Below are positions 4,725-26,099 of a DNA stretch of 64,000 nucleotides, in pieces (the stretch's first letter is position 1; each line of letters begins with the position of its first letter). The DNA is from Geosiphon pyriformis uo1 (Eukaryota; Fungi; Glomeromycota): the NCBI GenBank assembly GCA_016748015.1, contig JAAOMT010000193.1, positions 62,001 to 126,000 of the forward strand, in the 5' to 3' direction. Under the pieces are notes generated by a model. The model was not told the origin of the DNA. It saw only the letters and a list, made by a program, of their open reading frames with translations, and did no database searches. A program made the translations under genes and the position numbers.

Positions 4725-5923
4725 CTTTCCCGAGGTTGTTACAAATCTATTAATCCATAAGTTGTTATATATAAGTCAAAAAATAATTATTTTAACATTA
4801 AGACAATTTTCCAACATTATTTTAATATTGACAATTTTAAATTTATTTATATATTTAAGAGTGTGGGTGACACTTTTTACATGTAATCACCCACTTGTAT
4901 TAGTTCTAAATATAGCCAATTTTTAAACTCCAATAATAACTGGATATCGCGCACTGTGAATCTTGTAATAAGTTGTTTGAGATCCTTCTAGATCTACCAT
5001 TTTGTGCTTCCACATATTTTGCCTAATGTCTGTATACATATTAGTATCGTTAGAATTTATGTCTAAATAATTTTGAATCTAAATTTATAAATTGCTTTGT
5101 TATTTTCTTAGTTCTTTTATTTGACAATCGATCAGCGTTTGCGATTGGTGAACATCTTCATCCTTTGATGCTATGCCATGCTATTTAATTTTTCCGATTG
5201 GTAGCGCATCCCAAAATTTTGGTTAACAGCATATAATTCGTTCCTACGATTGATCGATTAGGAAATCTTTATGTAAAATTAAGCGATCTACGGTGATCGT
5301 ATTCATGGTTTCAGATTCCGAAAATAACTCTCAGTCTAAGCACAAACCATCACGTTTTAACTTGAAATTCCAAGATCCCTTTTATACTTTAGATAATCAC
5401 ACTGTCGATATTATTGAGGCATTATCATTTGTCGATTATCAGCTCAAAATTTTGGAATCGACTCCTCTATTTAAATAATGAAGTATAAAACTGATTTGTG
5501 ATAATGAAATGTTTAACAATGTTTCGTTTTATATTAATTGTCGCTTTGATCTTGGGATGGAGTTCTATTGGTATATAAAAATTTTAATATAATAAAACAA
5601 ACAACAAAGACTTTGAACCCTGAATCAACATATAAGATGAAGGAAACGATAAAAAATATAATACAAATGTATAAAAATATTATGTAATATAGAAATACAG
5701 TTTAAGAAATAACTAGTAATTTGAAATTAAAATGTTAGAGTTTGAATAAGGATGATAAAATATATATATGAAGTTATTTTATTTAGAAATGAGACGTTGC
5801 ATTAAACGTCTATTCATTCAGGAACACTTGTAAGCTAGCGTAATTTCACCTATAAAAGTGATTCCAAGAAGCGTTAATAAGGTTAAGGAATCGAGAACAG
5901 TTCATCGTTATAACCCAATAAAG

Positions 5924-19570: not shown

Positions 19571-20140
19571 TTTTTAAAGTATTATACGGCTAGGAATGAA
19601 GGATCTGCTAAACCTTGGGATAGAATTAAGGAGGAAAGAATCAAGTACCAGATTTCGTGGTTAAAGTGGTTTGTAGAACATACATCAAATAATATTGTTT
19701 TACATGATTTTTGATATTTGAGAACAACTTTTTAGATCTGCTTGTTGTCGAAATATTTAAATTGTTATGATCTCAAATTGCTTGATTTTAATTACCTCGA
19801 CATGTAGATTTTGCATAGTAATATTTAACCGCGATGTGCATATTATACATGTTAATAGGTTACATTCTGGAAATCAATCGTGACCCACATATTATTACTT
19901 ATTATTTAATTACCAACCAGGTTGGTTTATTAATACAACAAAAAATAACCTATAATTTCGAAGTTTTCTAACTTTCCAATTATATTAGATAATTTAATTA
20001 TTACCATAAATTTCCAGATATCTTCTATGGAATTAAGGTTGATCTAGCGATTCCATTTCCTAATGTACCTGGTGCTTTGGATTGTTCAACATTCTTATCT
20101 AAAATAGGAAAATTATACCGAAATAAAATACAAGTCAGAC

Positions 20141-22231
20141 TCATAGTTGTACATTTTCACGTATTTCTATTGATTCCCATTCCGCCATTGATTCTGGAAC
20201 CCAGATCCAATCTCGAACTGTTGGTACACCATCGGTGGAATTGGTGAATGCAAGCTTCTTTAACTCATTTATTTGGCCTTCGAGCCCACTCTAATAATCA
20301 AATATAAGTGTTATTAAAGCTTTCATTAAATTTAAGGATATATGTAATGTTATACTTACAATCAAAGCATAAAGTAGTTCAAATATTTCTAGAAATTTTT
20401 CAATTTCGTTGAATGAAAATGGTAATATCGCTGATTTAATTTGCGAAATTATATAGAAATGCTTTTTAACAAGCTGAATTTTGCTTAGCGTCATTCGATC
20501 ACCTAATAATATAAATTGCCATAAGATTCGTGCTGTTTAAAAAAAAACTGGTACAGTGGTGAATACATTACCAATAATCTGTACCATGTATGTGCATATA
20601 TTTTTCACATTCTCTGGATTCTTATCTAAATAGTCTCTCAGAAGGGATACCAGTCCAAACATTGCTTCTTTGATAAGCTTCTCAGAATCTTCTTTTACAT
20701 GTTTCGGCACAGTGCTCTCGGGACCCCCTGATACTTCAATGAATACAATCTCCTTGTTGTTAGAAACTTTCAGAACACCATCTGCTTTATTCAGCGTCAA
20801 ATCAAATTCTGGAAACAACATCTTCACTTCTTTGATACAGTCAAGTTGTACTTCAATCCAGTTGAATATATACTCTTTATAAATAGATTGTATTGCCTTG
20901 AATAAAGGCACAATTCTTTCCACTGTGTACTTTCGTTCCCCAATATGACGGTTTAATGGACCATCGCTGGCCATTGAAAAACTGATTTAAACAATGTGAG
21001 TTAATATATTTTGCCGAGAAAGTATTCATGTAAAATCCTGAATATACTTACAAGTCATAAAGAATAATTTCACAAATCTTCCGAAATTGATGGTCAGGGA
21101 TTAGTGGAACCATAACAACATTCTTGAATACATCTTTTCCAGACTAAATGAGAAAAGTTTTTTAATTCAGATATAATATATATAGACTTCATATTAACTT
21201 ACTGATAATACAGTATAAAGCCAATCACGAACTGATCCTGGAATTATATTAATTTTGATTTCCTTCATGATAACACACTGCTGATTAATATCTATTGAAA
21301 AATGTTTATCCAGATATTTGATAGAATTTGCGGAAAGTATTGGTTTTTGAGGAGTGGTCATCACAGTGTTTTGCGATCTGGAAGGAGGTGTTTTAGACTA
21401 ATGGAAACAATATTACTTAGGTATAATACTTAAAAACAAATTAAATTACATAAAAATTAATCCGACATCAACTTACACCATCGTCATTGTTCCTCATTTC
21501 AATGTCATTTTTAGATCTCTTTTTCATCTGAATCAAACATTGTAAAAAAAAGAAATCTTAATTAACCTTTTTAAAATAATTAAAATACATTTTTATTACA
21601 TACTTTGTTTGGTTTTTCGTTGTAATCTAAATCTGTTTCCTCATAATCAAATTCCGTTTCTTCTTCTGATGAGCTTTTAGTTTCGACTTTGTTTTTCCTT
21701 GATGCCACTTCAGAACAAGATGGTTCTCCTTTCTAAAGGGTGCCGTAAAAAATAATAAAGTTTGATTAATAAATCCTTTCCGTAGAATAGCTATAACAAA
21801 TTATGTTCACAATTACAAATTTACCAACCTTGTATTCATCGATGACCGTTTGATTTGTGCGGTAGCCCTAATAGAAATATGAGTTAAACCATTGTGGAAT
21901 TTTTTCCCAAGATTGTTTTAAAGCTTACATTTGTATCAAAGCCACATTCTTCTTGTTCCTCTCGAAGTTTATGAATAAATTCTTTTACTTCGACTGCAGA
22001 GAAGGATCTCTCAAAAGTGGATAGACACTTGCTTAACTTGTTGGTTACATTTATATTATTGTCACTATTTTTTTTGTATCTCCGTAGCGACGTATATATA
22101 TCATCCTTAAGAACATCGATGGAATCTACATGTAATCGACACTTTGATTTTGTATGTTCCAAAATAGAAATAATTGTCCAATCCCTGCATTCTATATTTT
22201 TGAGATATTCTGTCACAATAGATTCGAACAT
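20141..22231 (-). CDS. Multi-exon hypothetical protein with C-terminal PD-(D/E)xK restriction-endonuclease-like domain (Crinkler-type REase-like)
   Basis: ATG at 22231 with canonical short introns. The C-terminal exons read ERKYTVERIVPLF...FNWIE...KADGVLK...EIVFIEVSGGP...HVKEDSEKL, an E...D...ExS/K arrangement of the REase fold. The last exon ends SGLEGQINELKKL...RENVQL* at 20141. Confidence 0.7.
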
Positions 22232-25200
22232 CTTGGAAAGAGGAAGAGATGAAACACAGTTAGCTCAAGTACTTCTCCGGAGACTAGCATCAAACATCTA
22301 ACGCAGGACGAATGGCCATACGCCAGTAGGAATACATAATGTATTCTGAAACTAGCATGCAGAGAGCCTGGAGACTGCTTTCAAGCATCTAACGCAGGAC
22401 GTAATGGCCATACGCTAGTAGGTATACACAACGCGCTCAAGTACTTCTCCGGAGACTAGCATCAAACATCTAACGCAGGACGAATGGCCATACGCCAGTA
22501 GGAATACATAATGTATTCTGAAACTAGCATGCAGAGAGCCTGGAGACTGCTTTCAAGCATCTAACGCAGGACGTAATGGCCATACGCTAGTAGGTATACA
22601 CAACGCGCTCAAGTACTTCTCCGGAGACTAGCATCAAACATCTAACGCAGGACGAATGGCCATACGCCAGTAGGAATACATAATGTATTCTGAAACTAGC
22701 ATGCAGAGAGCCTGGAGACTGCTTTCAAGCATCTAACGCAGGACGTAATGGCCATACGCTAGTAGGTATACACAACGCGCTCAAGTACTTCTCCGGAGAC
22801 TAGCATCAAACATCTAACGCAGGACGAATGGCCATACGCCAGTAGGAATACATAATGTATTCTGAAACTAGCATGCAGAGAGCCTGGAGACTGCTTTCAA
22901 GCATCTAACGCAGGACGTAATGGCCATACGCTAGTAGGTATACACAACGCGCTCAAGTACTTCTCCGGAGACTAGCATCAAACATCTAACGCAGGACGAA
23001 TGGCCATACGCCAGTAGGAATACATAATGTATTCTGAAACTAGCATGCAGAGAGCCTGGAGACTGCTTTCAAGCATCTAACGCAGGACGTAATGGCCATA
23101 CGCTAGTAGGTATACACAACGCGCTCAAGTACTTCTCCGGAGACTAGCATCAAACATCTAACGCAGGACGAATGGCCATACGCCAGTAGGAATACATAAT
23201 GTATTCTGAAACTAGCATGCAGAGAGCCTGGAGACTGCTTTCAAGCATCTAACGCAGGACGTAATGGCCATACGCTAGTAGGTATACACAACGCGCTCAA
23301 GTACTTCTCCGGAGACTAGCATCAAACATCTAACGCAGGACGAATGGCCATACGCCAGTAGGAATACATAATGTATTCTGAAACTAGCATGCAGAGAGCC
23401 TGGAGACTGCTTTCAAGCATCTAACGCAGGACGTAATGGCCATACGCTAGTAGGTATACACAACGCGCTCAAGTACTTCTCCGGAGACTAGCATCAAACA
23501 TCTAACGCAGGACGAATGGCCATACGCCAGTAGGAATACATAATGTATTCTGAAACTAGCATGCAGAGAGCCTGGAGACTGCTTTCAAGCATCTAACGCA
23601 GGACGTAATGGCCATACGCTAGTAGGTATACACAACGCGCTCAAGTACTTCTCCGGAGACTAGCATCAAACATCTAACGCAGGACGAATGGCCATACGCC
23701 AGTAGGAATACATAATGTATTCTGAAACTAGCATGCAGAGAGCCTGGAGACTGCTTTCAAGCATCTAACGCAGGACGTAATGGCCATACGCTAGTAGGTA
23801 TACACAACGCGCTCAAGTACTTCTCCGGAGACTAGCATCAAACATCTAACGCAGGACGAATGGCCATACGCCAGTAGGAATACAGTGTATTCTGAAACTA
23901 GCATGCAGAGAGTCTGGAGACTGCTTTCAAGCATCTAACGCAGGGCGTAATGACCATACGCTAGTAGGTATACACAACGCGCTCAAGTACTTCTCCGGAG
24001 ACTAGCATCAAACATCTAACGCAGGACGAATGGCCATACGCCAGTAGGAATACATAATGTATTCTGAAACTAGCATGCAGAGAGTCTGGAGACTGCTTTC
24101 AAGCATCTAACGCAGGACGTAATGGCCATACGCTAGTAGGTATACATAACGCGCTCAAGTACTTCTCCGGAGACTAGCATCAAACATCTAACGCAGGACG
24201 AATGGCCATACGCCAGTAGGAATACATAATGTATTCTGAAACTAGCATGCAGAGAGCCTGGAGACTGCTTTCAAGCATCTAACGCAGGACGTAATGGCCA
24301 TACGCTAGTAGGTATACATAACGCGCTCAAGTACTTCTCCGGAGACTAGCATCAAACATCTAACGCAGGACGAATGGCCATACGCCAGTAGGAATACAGT
24401 GTATTCTGAAACTAGCATGCAGAGAGTCTGGAGACTGCTTTCAAGCATCTAACGCAGGGCGTAATGACCATACGCTAGTAGGTATACACAACACGCTCAA
24501 GTACTTCTCCGGAGACTAGCATCAAACATCTAACGCAGGACGAATGGCCATACGCCAGTAGGAATACATAATGTATTCTGAAACTAGCATGCAGAGAGTC
24601 TGGAGACTGCTTTCAAGCATCTAACGCAGGACGTAATGGCCATACGCTAGTAGGANNNNNNNNNNNNNNNNNNNNNNNNNNNNNNNNNNNNNNNNNNNNN
24701 NNNNNNNNNNNNNNNNNNNNNNNNNNNNNNNNNNNNNNNNNNNNNNNNNNNNNNNNNNNNNNNNNNNNNNNNNNNNNNNNNNNNNNNNNNNNNNNNNNNN
24801 NNNNNNNNNNNNNNNNNNNNNNNNNNNNNNNNNNNNNNNNNNNNNNNNNNNNNNNNNNNNNNNNNNNNNNNNNNNNNNNNNNNNNNNNNNNNNNNNNNNN
24901 NNNNNNNNNNNNNNNNNNNNNNNNNNNNNNNNNNNNNNNNNNNNNNNNNNNNNNNNNNNNNNNNNNNNNNNNNNNNNNNNNNNNNNNNNNNNNNNNNNNN
25001 NNNNNNNNNNNNNNNNNNNNNNNNNNNNNNNNNNNNNNNNNNNNNNNNNNNNNNNNNNNNNNNNNNNNNNNNNNNNNNNNNNNNNNNNNNNNNNNNNNNN
25101 NNNNNNNNNNNNNNNNTGTATTCTGAAACTAGCATGCAGAGAGTCTGGAGACTGCTTTCAAGCATCTAACGCAGGACGTAATGGCCATACGCTAGTAGGT

Positions 25201-25389
25201 ATACACAACACGCTCAAGTACTTCTCCGGAGACTAGCATCAAACATCTAACGCAGGACGAATGGCCATACGCCAGTAGGAATACATAATGTATTCTGAAA
25301 CTAGCATGCAGAGAGCCTGGAGACTGCTTTCAAGCATCTAACGCAGGACGTAATGGCCATACGCTAGTAGGAATAAAGTATACACTCAC
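22232..25389 (-). other. Predicted ~3.2 kb 5'-UTR intron of the nuclease gene, hosting the tandem array
   Basis: Minus strand: AAG|GTGAGT donor at 25389, then GCTAAC branch point (22264-22259), a polypyrimidine tract TGTGTTTCATCTCTTCCTCTTTCC, and an AG directly before the ATG. A TATAAAT lies ~50 bp upstream of the donor. Confidence 0.7.
22263..25371. repeat. 172-bp tandem array (~14 units before the gap, ~1.5 after); each unit is a dimer of two related ~55-bp cores with two different linkers
   Basis: GCTCAAGTACTT recurs at 22263, 22435, 22607 and onward. The cores are GGAGACTAGCATCAAACATCTAACGCAGGACGAATGGCCATACGCCAGTAGG and GGAGACTGCTTTCAAGCATCTAACGCAGGACGTAATGGCCATACGCTAGTAGG. N gap at 24656-25116. 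Confidence 0.98.
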
Positions 25390-25676
25390 CTTCGCGAAAA
25401 ATATATTGAAAATTTTAAATGATCTTGCAGTGTGATTTATACAAAAAAAGTAAGGATAGGCAATACTTTTTGACCAATAGTTTGGTTGATTTTTCACCCC
25501 ATGGAAAAGTCGCATTGTTTGAATGTGGCGATGTGGATCGTCTTTACGCAGCTTTGGCTAATGGGTGATTGGTATCTGGAAACCTTTCGGATTTTCAGAA
25601 AGCGCATGATCCAATTGAGTCTCTTAAAAAATGTCTATTTATCGCAGATTTCATTTGACACAATCACGGGGTTTAC

Positions 25677-25930
25677 AGGTTTTTACCCTATTGCAGGTTT
25701 TACCTAATTTATCGCAGGTTTTACCCAATCTATTACAAATTTTACCCAATCTATCACAGGTTTTATCCAATCTATCCAATCTATCACAGGCTTTACCCAA
25801 TTTATCGCAGTTTTTACCCAATCTATCATAGGTTTTACCCAATCTATCCAATCTATTGCAGATTTTACCTAATTTATCGCAGGTTTTACCCAATCTATTA
25901 CAAATTTTACCCAATCTATTACAAATTTTA
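25677..25930. repeat. 21-bp minisatellite (consensus GGTTTTACCCAATCTATCGCA), ~11 copies
   Basis: Directly visible. It produces the spurious LPNLSQV / DRLGKTC heptad ORFs. Confidence 0.9.
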
Positions 25931-26099
25931 TATTACATGACTAATCATTACAGGTTTTACTATTTGTTATTTTAGATTTTATTCTGTTGTATTTTAATTG
26001 TTAACAATTTTTTACATATTAATTTACTAAATTTTATATTTTTTTAAATATTATTATTTTTTAATTTTTTATTGTTTTATCTATTTATGTAAAACATAC

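Follow-up and report, generated by a model that had tools for sequence, protein, structure and literature searches.

Very few structured RNAs are known to us that regulate nuclear genes of Eukaryota in cis. In fungi, the thiamine pyrophosphate (TPP) riboswitch resides in introns of the 5' untranslated region (5'-UTR), e.g. in NMT1 of Neurospora, where retention or alternative splicing leaves upstream AUGs that block translation, and in yeast the ribosomal-protein genes RPL30 and RPS14B carry autoregulatory structures in their leaders or introns. Here we describe a candidate for a new RNA of this kind, found in a window of 64,000 nucleotides (nt) from Geosiphon pyriformis uo1 (contig JAAOMT010000193.1, positions 62,001 to 126,000). 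It is an element of about 115 nt that at related loci stands before the first coding exon of a family of nuclease-fold proteins; in the leader of the Geosiphon gene G9A89_011442 it has given rise to a tandem array of 172-bp repeats. It is the element, rather than the array, that we regard as the candidate regulatory RNA, previously undescribed and widespread in Glomeromycotina.

Like the TPP riboswitch, the element is a conserved, structured RNA of a fungal gene leader, with splice signals on either side. However, the element has no match in Rfam (E up to 10) and no known ligand, it occurs in tandem, and it is tied to a nuclease-fold rather than a metabolic gene family; its role in regulation is proposed here. 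With RPL30 and RPS14B it would share the logic of a gene product, or another factor, that acts on the folded pre-mRNA of its own gene and holds back splicing. On the other hand, both the protein and the RNA are unrelated to those of yeast, the element is duplicated and in Geosiphon amplified, and the binding is a proposal. The array also resembles the type III toxin-antitoxin systems (ToxI/ToxN), in which tandem RNA repeats lie immediately upstream of, and are co-transcribed with, a nuclease gene. In this case, however, the host is a eukaryote, the protein has a restriction endonuclease (REase)-like fold without a match to any known endoribonuclease toxin family in Pfam or PADLOC, relatives have one to three repeats rather than a conserved number, and nothing indicates processing of the units. 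Finally, the homogeneous head-to-tail units, their two-half structure, the assembly gap and a second array at the Geosiphon locus C574 are all reminiscent of satellites that arise from tandem duplication by unequal exchange. The array differs from ordinary satellites in that its seed is a conserved structured RNA element of a gene leader and in that it is transcribed with the gene.

The element before exon 1

The leader of the gene comprises the following features of the window, listed in the direction of transcription:
25436..25441, minus strand: TATAAA, a possible core promoter, some 50 nt before the donor-like site (inferred)
25392..25397, minus strand: TCGCGA, a CGCG-core motif, read from the sequence
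25384..25389, minus strand: donor-like GTGAGT after AAG, with its G at 25389; no spliced reads seen
22263..25385, minus strand: tandem array of 172-bp units, from Tandem Repeats Finder (TRF) and anchor mapping, interrupted by a run of N
24656..25116, no strand: assembly gap (run of N), both edges within the array
22232..22263, minus strand: CTAAC, pyrimidine tract and AG, adjoining the ATG; transcribed unspliced in contig record 2 of the RNA data
21929..22231, minus strand: coding exon 1, 101 codons, N-terminal helical domain

At the related loci, the element is 105-127 nt long, occurs in one to three tandem copies and is followed, after about 60-235 nt, by a pyrimidine tract, AG and the ATG of a homologue of exon 1, the part of the protein whose homologues always stand behind the element. 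In Gigaspora rosea a pair of elements (L032:5496-5730) precedes the ATG at 5827, with a pyrimidine tract and AAG/ATG in between, and the start of the orthologue lies 174 nt upstream of the annotated one. The core is 94-97% identical to that of Gigaspora over 37-65 nt, whereas the protein encoded by exon 1 is only 69% identical; the element is conserved far better than the neighbouring coding sequence. Rhizophagus irregularis (L062) has one copy upstream of its homologue. The element also precedes homologues in Diversispora epigaea, in Dentiscutata erythropus and on a contig labelled Ambispora leptoticha, and it is carried by several metagenome contigs, some of which break off before the ATG or inside the element. 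In the whole Geosiphon assembly the covariance model R1 finds the element at ten loci. Beyond the window it is accompanied by an exon-1 homologue in five places (C645, where a pair of elements precedes the paralogue, C708 twice, C574 and C86), and no gene is detectable at C673 or at three isolated single copies; the model also detects a second, independent array of a paralogous element at C574. The element was not found upstream of the members of other subfamilies, i.e. P0110 of R. irregularis, P0006 of Paraglomus, P0008 of Diversispora eburnea and the C710 paralogue of Geosiphon. Taken together, the loci compared show a fixed position of the element before the exon-1 homologues, across several orders of Glomeromycotina as well as among the Geosiphon paralogues. 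The sequence-only reading had named, as a sign against itself, the occurrence of the same 172-mer as a generic satellite unlinked to nuclease genes; the scan of the assembly, in which the element is linked to the gene family, excludes this. That reading had also proposed to test the upstream regions of the homologues for the same core with different 'linkers', and they indeed carry it.

Single-sequence folds of about 20 copies nearly always yield one shape of five helices, in which a 5' hairpin P1 of 8+3 pairs is joined by a hinge to a long 3' hairpin P2-P3-P4. P1 and the hinge (about 42 nt) are near-invariant; P2-P4 change in sequence and keep their pairing, and RNAalifold reports helices with compensatory pairs. 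In a MAFFT alignment of 19 copies, 86.6% of the cells are paired, compared to 36-45% when the alignment is slid, 16 of the 39 pairs have changed on both sides, and the covariation (0.251, versus 0.159 in shuffles) is reached by none of 500 shuffles. In the alignment A4 of 28 distinct copies the corresponding values are 86.4% paired cells, against 34-45% when slid, and 22 compensatory pairs out of 39, counts that lean towards the model to which A4 was fitted; all five measures exceed those of all 500 shuffles. Several positions are fixed G-U pairs, which restricts the fold to the sense strand of the gene, and the folding z-scores range from -1.6 to -3.6 for the sense and from 0 to -1.5 for the antisense strand. 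The element is therefore a structured RNA, with strand-specific helices backed by compensatory changes. Rfam (Rfam 15) gave no match at E up to 1 in the window segment 22000-25600 and none at E up to 10 for the element in L032, L030, L029 and L031, in agreement with the sequence-only reading, which had failed to place the repeat in a known RNA family; riboswitches, ribozymes and snoRNAs are among the families thus covered.

The structured region is flanked by conserved splice-like signals. At 13 of the 13 loci compared, a donor-like GT precedes the first element by 25-60 nt, with a perfect GTAAGT at C574 and AAG/GTCAGT in Rhizophagus, and the signals on the acceptor side are kept at the Gigaspora, C645, C708, Rhizophagus, Diversispora, Dentiscutata and L065 loci. 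In the window, the homology to the repeat begins at 25385, within the donor-like hexamer, and the last half-unit passes into CTAAC (22263-22259), the pyrimidine tract and AG (22233-22232), followed by the ATG at 22231. The segment 22232..22263 is homologous to the conserved YTGACTGTGT motif together with the branch-like site, pyrimidine tract and AAG/ATG of the relatives, and about 55 nt are deleted in it relative to L065. By sequence, therefore, the homologues conserve a GT donor, a branch-like site, a pyrimidine tract and AG, as befits an intron of the 5'-UTR; no spliced junction is present in the contigs of RNA run X1 described below, in which a minor or short-exon isoform could be hidden.

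The first 30 coding nt (window 22202-22231) are nearly identical, synonymous sites included, in Geosiphon, Gigaspora, Diversispora, Dentiscutata and a metagenome relative, which hints at an RNA-level constraint that may extend into exon 1. On the upstream side, nearly all related loci have ACGCGT, TCGCGA or ACGCGA 30-110 nt before the donor-like site, and this in AT-rich genomes. In Gigaspora rosea (L032:5295-5441) a 73-bp segment with ACGCGT is duplicated in tandem (two copies, 97%) just upstream of this site. In our view these CGCG-core motifs are similar to the MluI cell-cycle box of fungi, a likeness that would point to transcription of the G1/S type.

Several other identities were considered for the element and rejected. 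A by-eye resemblance to 5S rRNA did not survive alignment with a true 5S gene (L036; z at most 1.4 against shuffles), and RF00001, which recovers 16 true genes at other places, gives no match at the element. About 10 kb from the C645 pair there is a genuine 5S rRNA gene (G000:C645:590989-591107), probably by coincidence. An upstream peptide, MAITSCVRCL, whose frame begins within P1, is unlikely to be conserved, since its AUG is lost in 6 of the 19 copies and 1-nt indels break the frame; another frame, IPTGVWPLRPA, ends in stops in the window. The idea of a Helitron-like end (a hairpin followed by CTAG), also suggested by eye, is contradicted by the sense-only G-U pairing and the conserved splice-like flanks, and a second end was not found.

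The repeat array and its transcript

The array of the window is the extreme form of this leader. TRF reports 13.9 copies of the 172-bp unit at 22263-24654 (98% matches, score 4665); about 1.6 further copies follow beyond the gap up to 25385, so that the assembled array comprises at least 15.5 units. Each unit consists of a half B (92 nt) and a half A (80 nt) with a common core of about 45 nt, which provides 31 core anchors. The units are 98-100% alike and their 'linkers' are invariant from one unit to another. The claim of the sequence-only reading that a 172-bp array lies between GTGAGT and the CTAAC/pyrimidine/AG signals adjoining the ATG is borne out by the sequence and by TRF, and its scheme of core A - linker 1 - core B - linker 2 corresponds to the two half-units. 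At high identity the 172-mer occurs at a single locus of the 128-Mb Geosiphon assembly. Like anchors on both sides of the gap are 545 bp, i.e. 3.17 units, apart; the estimated gap length is thus out of register with the period and the true copy number is hidden. The two units that flank the gap have a private variant in common and yet are not identical, so the gap is not a simple overlap. No coding sequence spans it, and the reading frame is unaffected. Homogeneous tandem units at one locus, without an array in relatives, qualify the array as a satellite, a term that does not extend to the element.

Comparison with the intact element reveals what the units are. Half B has kept P1, P2 and P3 and lost P4, and half A has kept P1, with a 1-nt deletion in the loop, and only the 5' strands of P2-P4; model R1 scores the B halves at 66 bits and the A halves at 49 bits. 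The 'linkers' are remnants of the ancestral helices P2-P4, and a role for them as spacers or guides is unsupported. Nor is there support for the array as the functional unit, given that relatives possess one to three full elements, of which the array units are deletion derivatives. The array was found in no relative, which together with the near-identity of the units indicates a recent, lineage-specific expansion. The simplest route would be unequal exchange within an ancestral tandem pair of elements, a process that would have occurred independently also at C574. Among the explanations offered earlier, amplification of an intron interior came closest to the truth, but it did not recognise what was amplified, namely a structured RNA of deep conservation.

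Evidence at the RNA level comes from one public run, X1, in the form of contigs; the region compared was 20000-22700, and the label of the run is uncertain. The coding introns have zero depth, hence the run behaves as RNA. All eight of them are removed at spliced joints, which confirms the gene model put forward from the sequence. In contig record 2 exons 1-3 are spliced, and the stretch 21928-22292 is continuous and unspliced across the AG at 22233-22232. The record ends after exactly 30 nt of repeat, the point at which a graph built on 31-letter words has to branch. Since a contig thus runs from exon 1 into the last repeat, transcription does not start downstream of the array, and the predicted co-transcription of array and gene is supported. 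The prediction that the array is excised as a lariat of about 3 kb, in contrast, is not supported: the acceptor is unspliced, position 22232 shows neither a joint nor a loose end, and the words of the array contig are about 21-fold deeper than those of the gene contigs (581.5 versus 27.7 and 20.2). This depth corresponds to roughly one copy-equivalent per mRNA, or to one per copy only if the true array, whose number of units the gap hides, has about 21 of them. Unlike the coding introns, the array is retained in the steady-state transcript or is at least as abundant as the transcript.

Possible action of the element and alternatives

With some reserve we favour the explanation that the element is a cis-acting regulatory RNA of the leader, i.e. 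of a (detained) 5'-UTR intron, and that it was amplified in Geosiphon, where the array is retained in the transcript. A conserved factor, possibly the encoded protein, would bind the element, and the element would set the share of transcripts that lose the leader. The array contains seven AUGs per unit and at least 108 in all, so that under the scanning model the retained transcripts should be poorly translated. Relatives have putative leader introns of about 350-500 nt; enlargement beyond 3 kb, in a fungus whose other introns at this locus are shorter than 100 nt, would favour retention. The array itself is most likely a neutral or throttling by-product devoid of a new function, with neutrality as the default. 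The element provides a testable handle on post-transcriptional control in the arbuscular mycorrhizal fungi, which are genetically hard to study, and an uncharacterised nuclease-fold family gains a possible connection to RNA. The element keeps its leader position through Archaeosporales, Diversisporales and Glomerales, and the Geosiphon array may be regarded as a natural experiment, in which a leader of more than 3 kb with its upstream AUGs is apparently retained.

A number of points weigh against the proposed regulatory role. A spliced junction between an exon 0 and exon 1 was seen in no species, so that the 'intron' consists of conserved sequence signals only, and the AAG/ATG context with its pyrimidine tract could equally be a start-codon context or another feature of the leader. 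The RNA data are a single set in contig form, with no strand, ends or rare isoforms, in which a short first exon could have been clipped by the assembler as a tip. The structure was derived from the same sequences that were used to evaluate it. P4 is missing from the array units, the 3' strands are missing altogether from half of them, and the B half alone is no more stable than its shuffles (z -0.37). Several copies of the element with exon 1 are pseudogenes or fragments, a pattern that also fits a duplicating module, and neither a trans factor nor a ligand of the element is known.

Two variants concern the partner of the RNA. It is conceivable, if rather unlikely, that protein and element are specific partners: the REase-fold protein would bind or cut the P1-hinge region of its own leader and in this way set its own level, with the Geosiphon array as a multiplied substrate or decoy. 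Alternatively, the element might sense a small molecule and represent a second class of eukaryotic riboswitches that steers the splicing of a leader intron. One may also ask whether the element acts on this gene at all. An intron-hosted small non-coding RNA acting in trans (similar to small nucleolar RNAs, or Dicer-dependent), with the protein gene as a mere host and the array as a multi-copy precursor, would account for the tandem copies within a probable 5'-UTR intron, for the conserved two-hairpin shape with its invariant 42-nt stretch and for the high depth of the array in RNA. We nonetheless give this explanation little credence: inspection of the element revealed no C/D or H/ACA boxes, Rfam has no match, a trans-acting RNA would have no need to be linked so strictly to a single gene family in paralogues and across orders, the last unit is joined to exon 1 in a contig, and the array units are truncated.

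The fragmentary copies consisting of the element and exon 1 only, some of them inverted duplicates or pseudogenes (C708, C574, C86, Dentiscutata), the second amplified array at C574 and the many members of the protein family in Mucoromycota could be taken as traces of a duplicating, possibly mobile module, made of the element with exon 1 or with the whole gene, whose hairpins would be terminal or recognition structures, preserved by selection for propagation rather than for host function. Yet neither terminal inverted repeats nor a second copy of the element flank the gene in the window or in Gigaspora, Geosiphon has only one full-length copy, with the next paralogue 55% identical, and the gene with its eight introns is expressed and correctly spliced. 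Moreover, sense-only G-U pairing points to an RNA, and the splice-like signals are conserved on both sides, so we regard a module of this kind as improbable. Still less probable is the idea, put forward by the sequence-only reading, that the array functions as a repeat-linker RNA, be it guide, scaffold or antitoxin, in partnership with the nuclease, after the model of type III toxin-antitoxin pairs. The appeal of the idea lies in tandem RNA repeats that directly precede a nuclease-fold gene and share its transcript, but nothing else was found in favour of such a logic: no relative has an array, only one to three copies, the 'linkers' are invariant helix remnants, the homogeneity of the units implies a recent expansion, the protein matches no toxin family or defence model, and a terminator-like separation of repeats and gene is absent. 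We are equally sceptical about neutral repetitive DNA, i.e. an ordinary minisatellite in a promoter or intron, as an explanation of the whole region. The homogeneous units, the single locus, the assembly gap and an adjacent 21-bp minisatellite agree with it as far as the array is concerned; for the element it is contradicted by the 94-97% conservation of the core across orders, compared to 69-81% identity of the coding sequence, by covariation in 22 of 39 pairs and by the fixed position before the exon-1 homologues.

The gene, its protein family and further copies of the element

G9A89_011442 lies on the minus strand and has nine coding exons, which encode a protein of about 503 amino acids. 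Exons 2-9 follow exon 1 in this order:
21829..21867, minus strand: coding exon 2, from RNA contig joints
21604..21732, minus strand: coding exon 3, from RNA contigs
21477..21527, minus strand: coding exon 4, from RNA contigs
21203..21397, minus strand: coding exon 5, from RNA contigs
21052..21143, minus strand: coding exon 6, from RNA contigs
20572..20981, minus strand: coding exon 7, core of the REase-like domain (ERKY, WIE, ADG, EVSGGP, KH..ED..K)
20360..20502, minus strand: coding exon 8, from RNA contigs
20141..20290, minus strand: coding exon 9, stop at 20143-20141; the transcript continues unspliced to at least 20014

The eight coding introns measure 59-96 nt and are all of the GT..AG type, which would make a leader intron of about 3.1 kb an outlier. 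The public protein P0114 (G9A89_011442) agrees with the exon model apart from an extra splice at the 3' end that is absent from the RNA contig. No terminal inverted repeats were found around the window gene, and no synteny with the Gigaspora neighbours was seen within +/-6 kb, where the tblastx output was noisy. The gene is the sole full-length copy in the Geosiphon genome.

In the homology searches the exons were queried singly, and questions that require the whole protein were addressed with public proteins (P0114, P0110 and others). Pfam, PADLOC and a sequence profile search of the PDB gave no match for any exon or homologue. A HMMER search against 1.8 billion representatives returned 108 relatives, all without names and nearly all from Glomeromycotina (Gigaspora, Funneliformis, Rhizophagus, Paraglomus, Diversispora and Ambispora), plus one from a chytrid; the ESM Atlas contains only unnamed clusters from Mucoromycota, where the family has many members. 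A literature search found no paper on this protein family or on the RNA element; a paper on the Glomhopper Crypton proved to be unrelated to either.

An AlphaFold (AF2) model was made for the R. irregularis homologue P0110 from an alignment of 32 sequences. Its C-terminal domain is predicted with high reliability (predicted local distance difference test, pLDDT, above 90) and has an alpha-beta-beta-beta-alpha-beta core (helix 271-289, strands 293-301, 321-328 and 333-341, helix 349-374, strand 386-393). VIA-align relates the domain to the nuclease domains of BpuSI (Z 10.0) and DrdV (9.2), to TT1808 (8.5), to mitoribosomal chains (3j7y_5 and 7a5f_s3, 10.7-10.8) and to many other restriction enzymes (5-8); Foldseek alone is weak, with no match below 1e-3 for the P0110 model. 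The predicted structure and these matches support a restriction-endonuclease-like fold of the PD-(D/E)xK type for the C-terminal domain, in accordance with the sequence-only reading. The near-invariant residues are E271, R272, W297, E299, D323, E339, G342, P344, H351, D355 and K358. As in BpuSI, DrdV, TT1808 and the mitoribosomal chains, the common core carries an acidic residue on strand 2 (D323) and a Glu on strand 3 (E339), both at least 90% conserved. In contrast to PD-(D/E)xK domains, however, the Geosiphon family shows no sequence-level match in Pfam, the PDB or PADLOC, and EVSGGP places Ser at the position of Lys, so that the third motif reads E-x-S instead of E-x-K; the near-invariant K358 lies on the following helix.

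The element also bears on the annotation of these genes. It accounts for the wrong gene models P0109 and P0115, which translate through the RNA element (IPTGVWPLRPA twice), and the Gigaspora model P0001 begins 174 nt too late and lacks exon 1.

Some of the further copies show rearrangements. At G000:C708:763029-764961 (L031) the element pair with its exon-1 homologue forms an inverted duplication; as the copies face each other at a distance of about 1.4 kb, neither gene can be complete. Fragments closely related to this one are present at C574 and at C86, the latter with an in-frame stop. A second tandem array, at G000:C574:20448-25420 (L082:8449-9945, L087:467-3421), is built of 99/165-nt units that are about 90% alike and contain the C708-type paralogous element. 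An N gap separates it from the element and exon-1 paralogue at C574:16919-17463, which are on the other strand. In Dentiscutata erythropus (L069:2692-2930) a sequence of about 240 bp that has long inverted repeats at its ends and resembles a miniature inverted-repeat transposable element is inserted between the element pair and the acceptor-like site, and the exon-1 homologue behind it has stops. In the window itself, a separate 21-bp minisatellite (25667-25952) of about 12 copies with 9-bp interrupting steps is located 280 nt upstream of the donor-like site.

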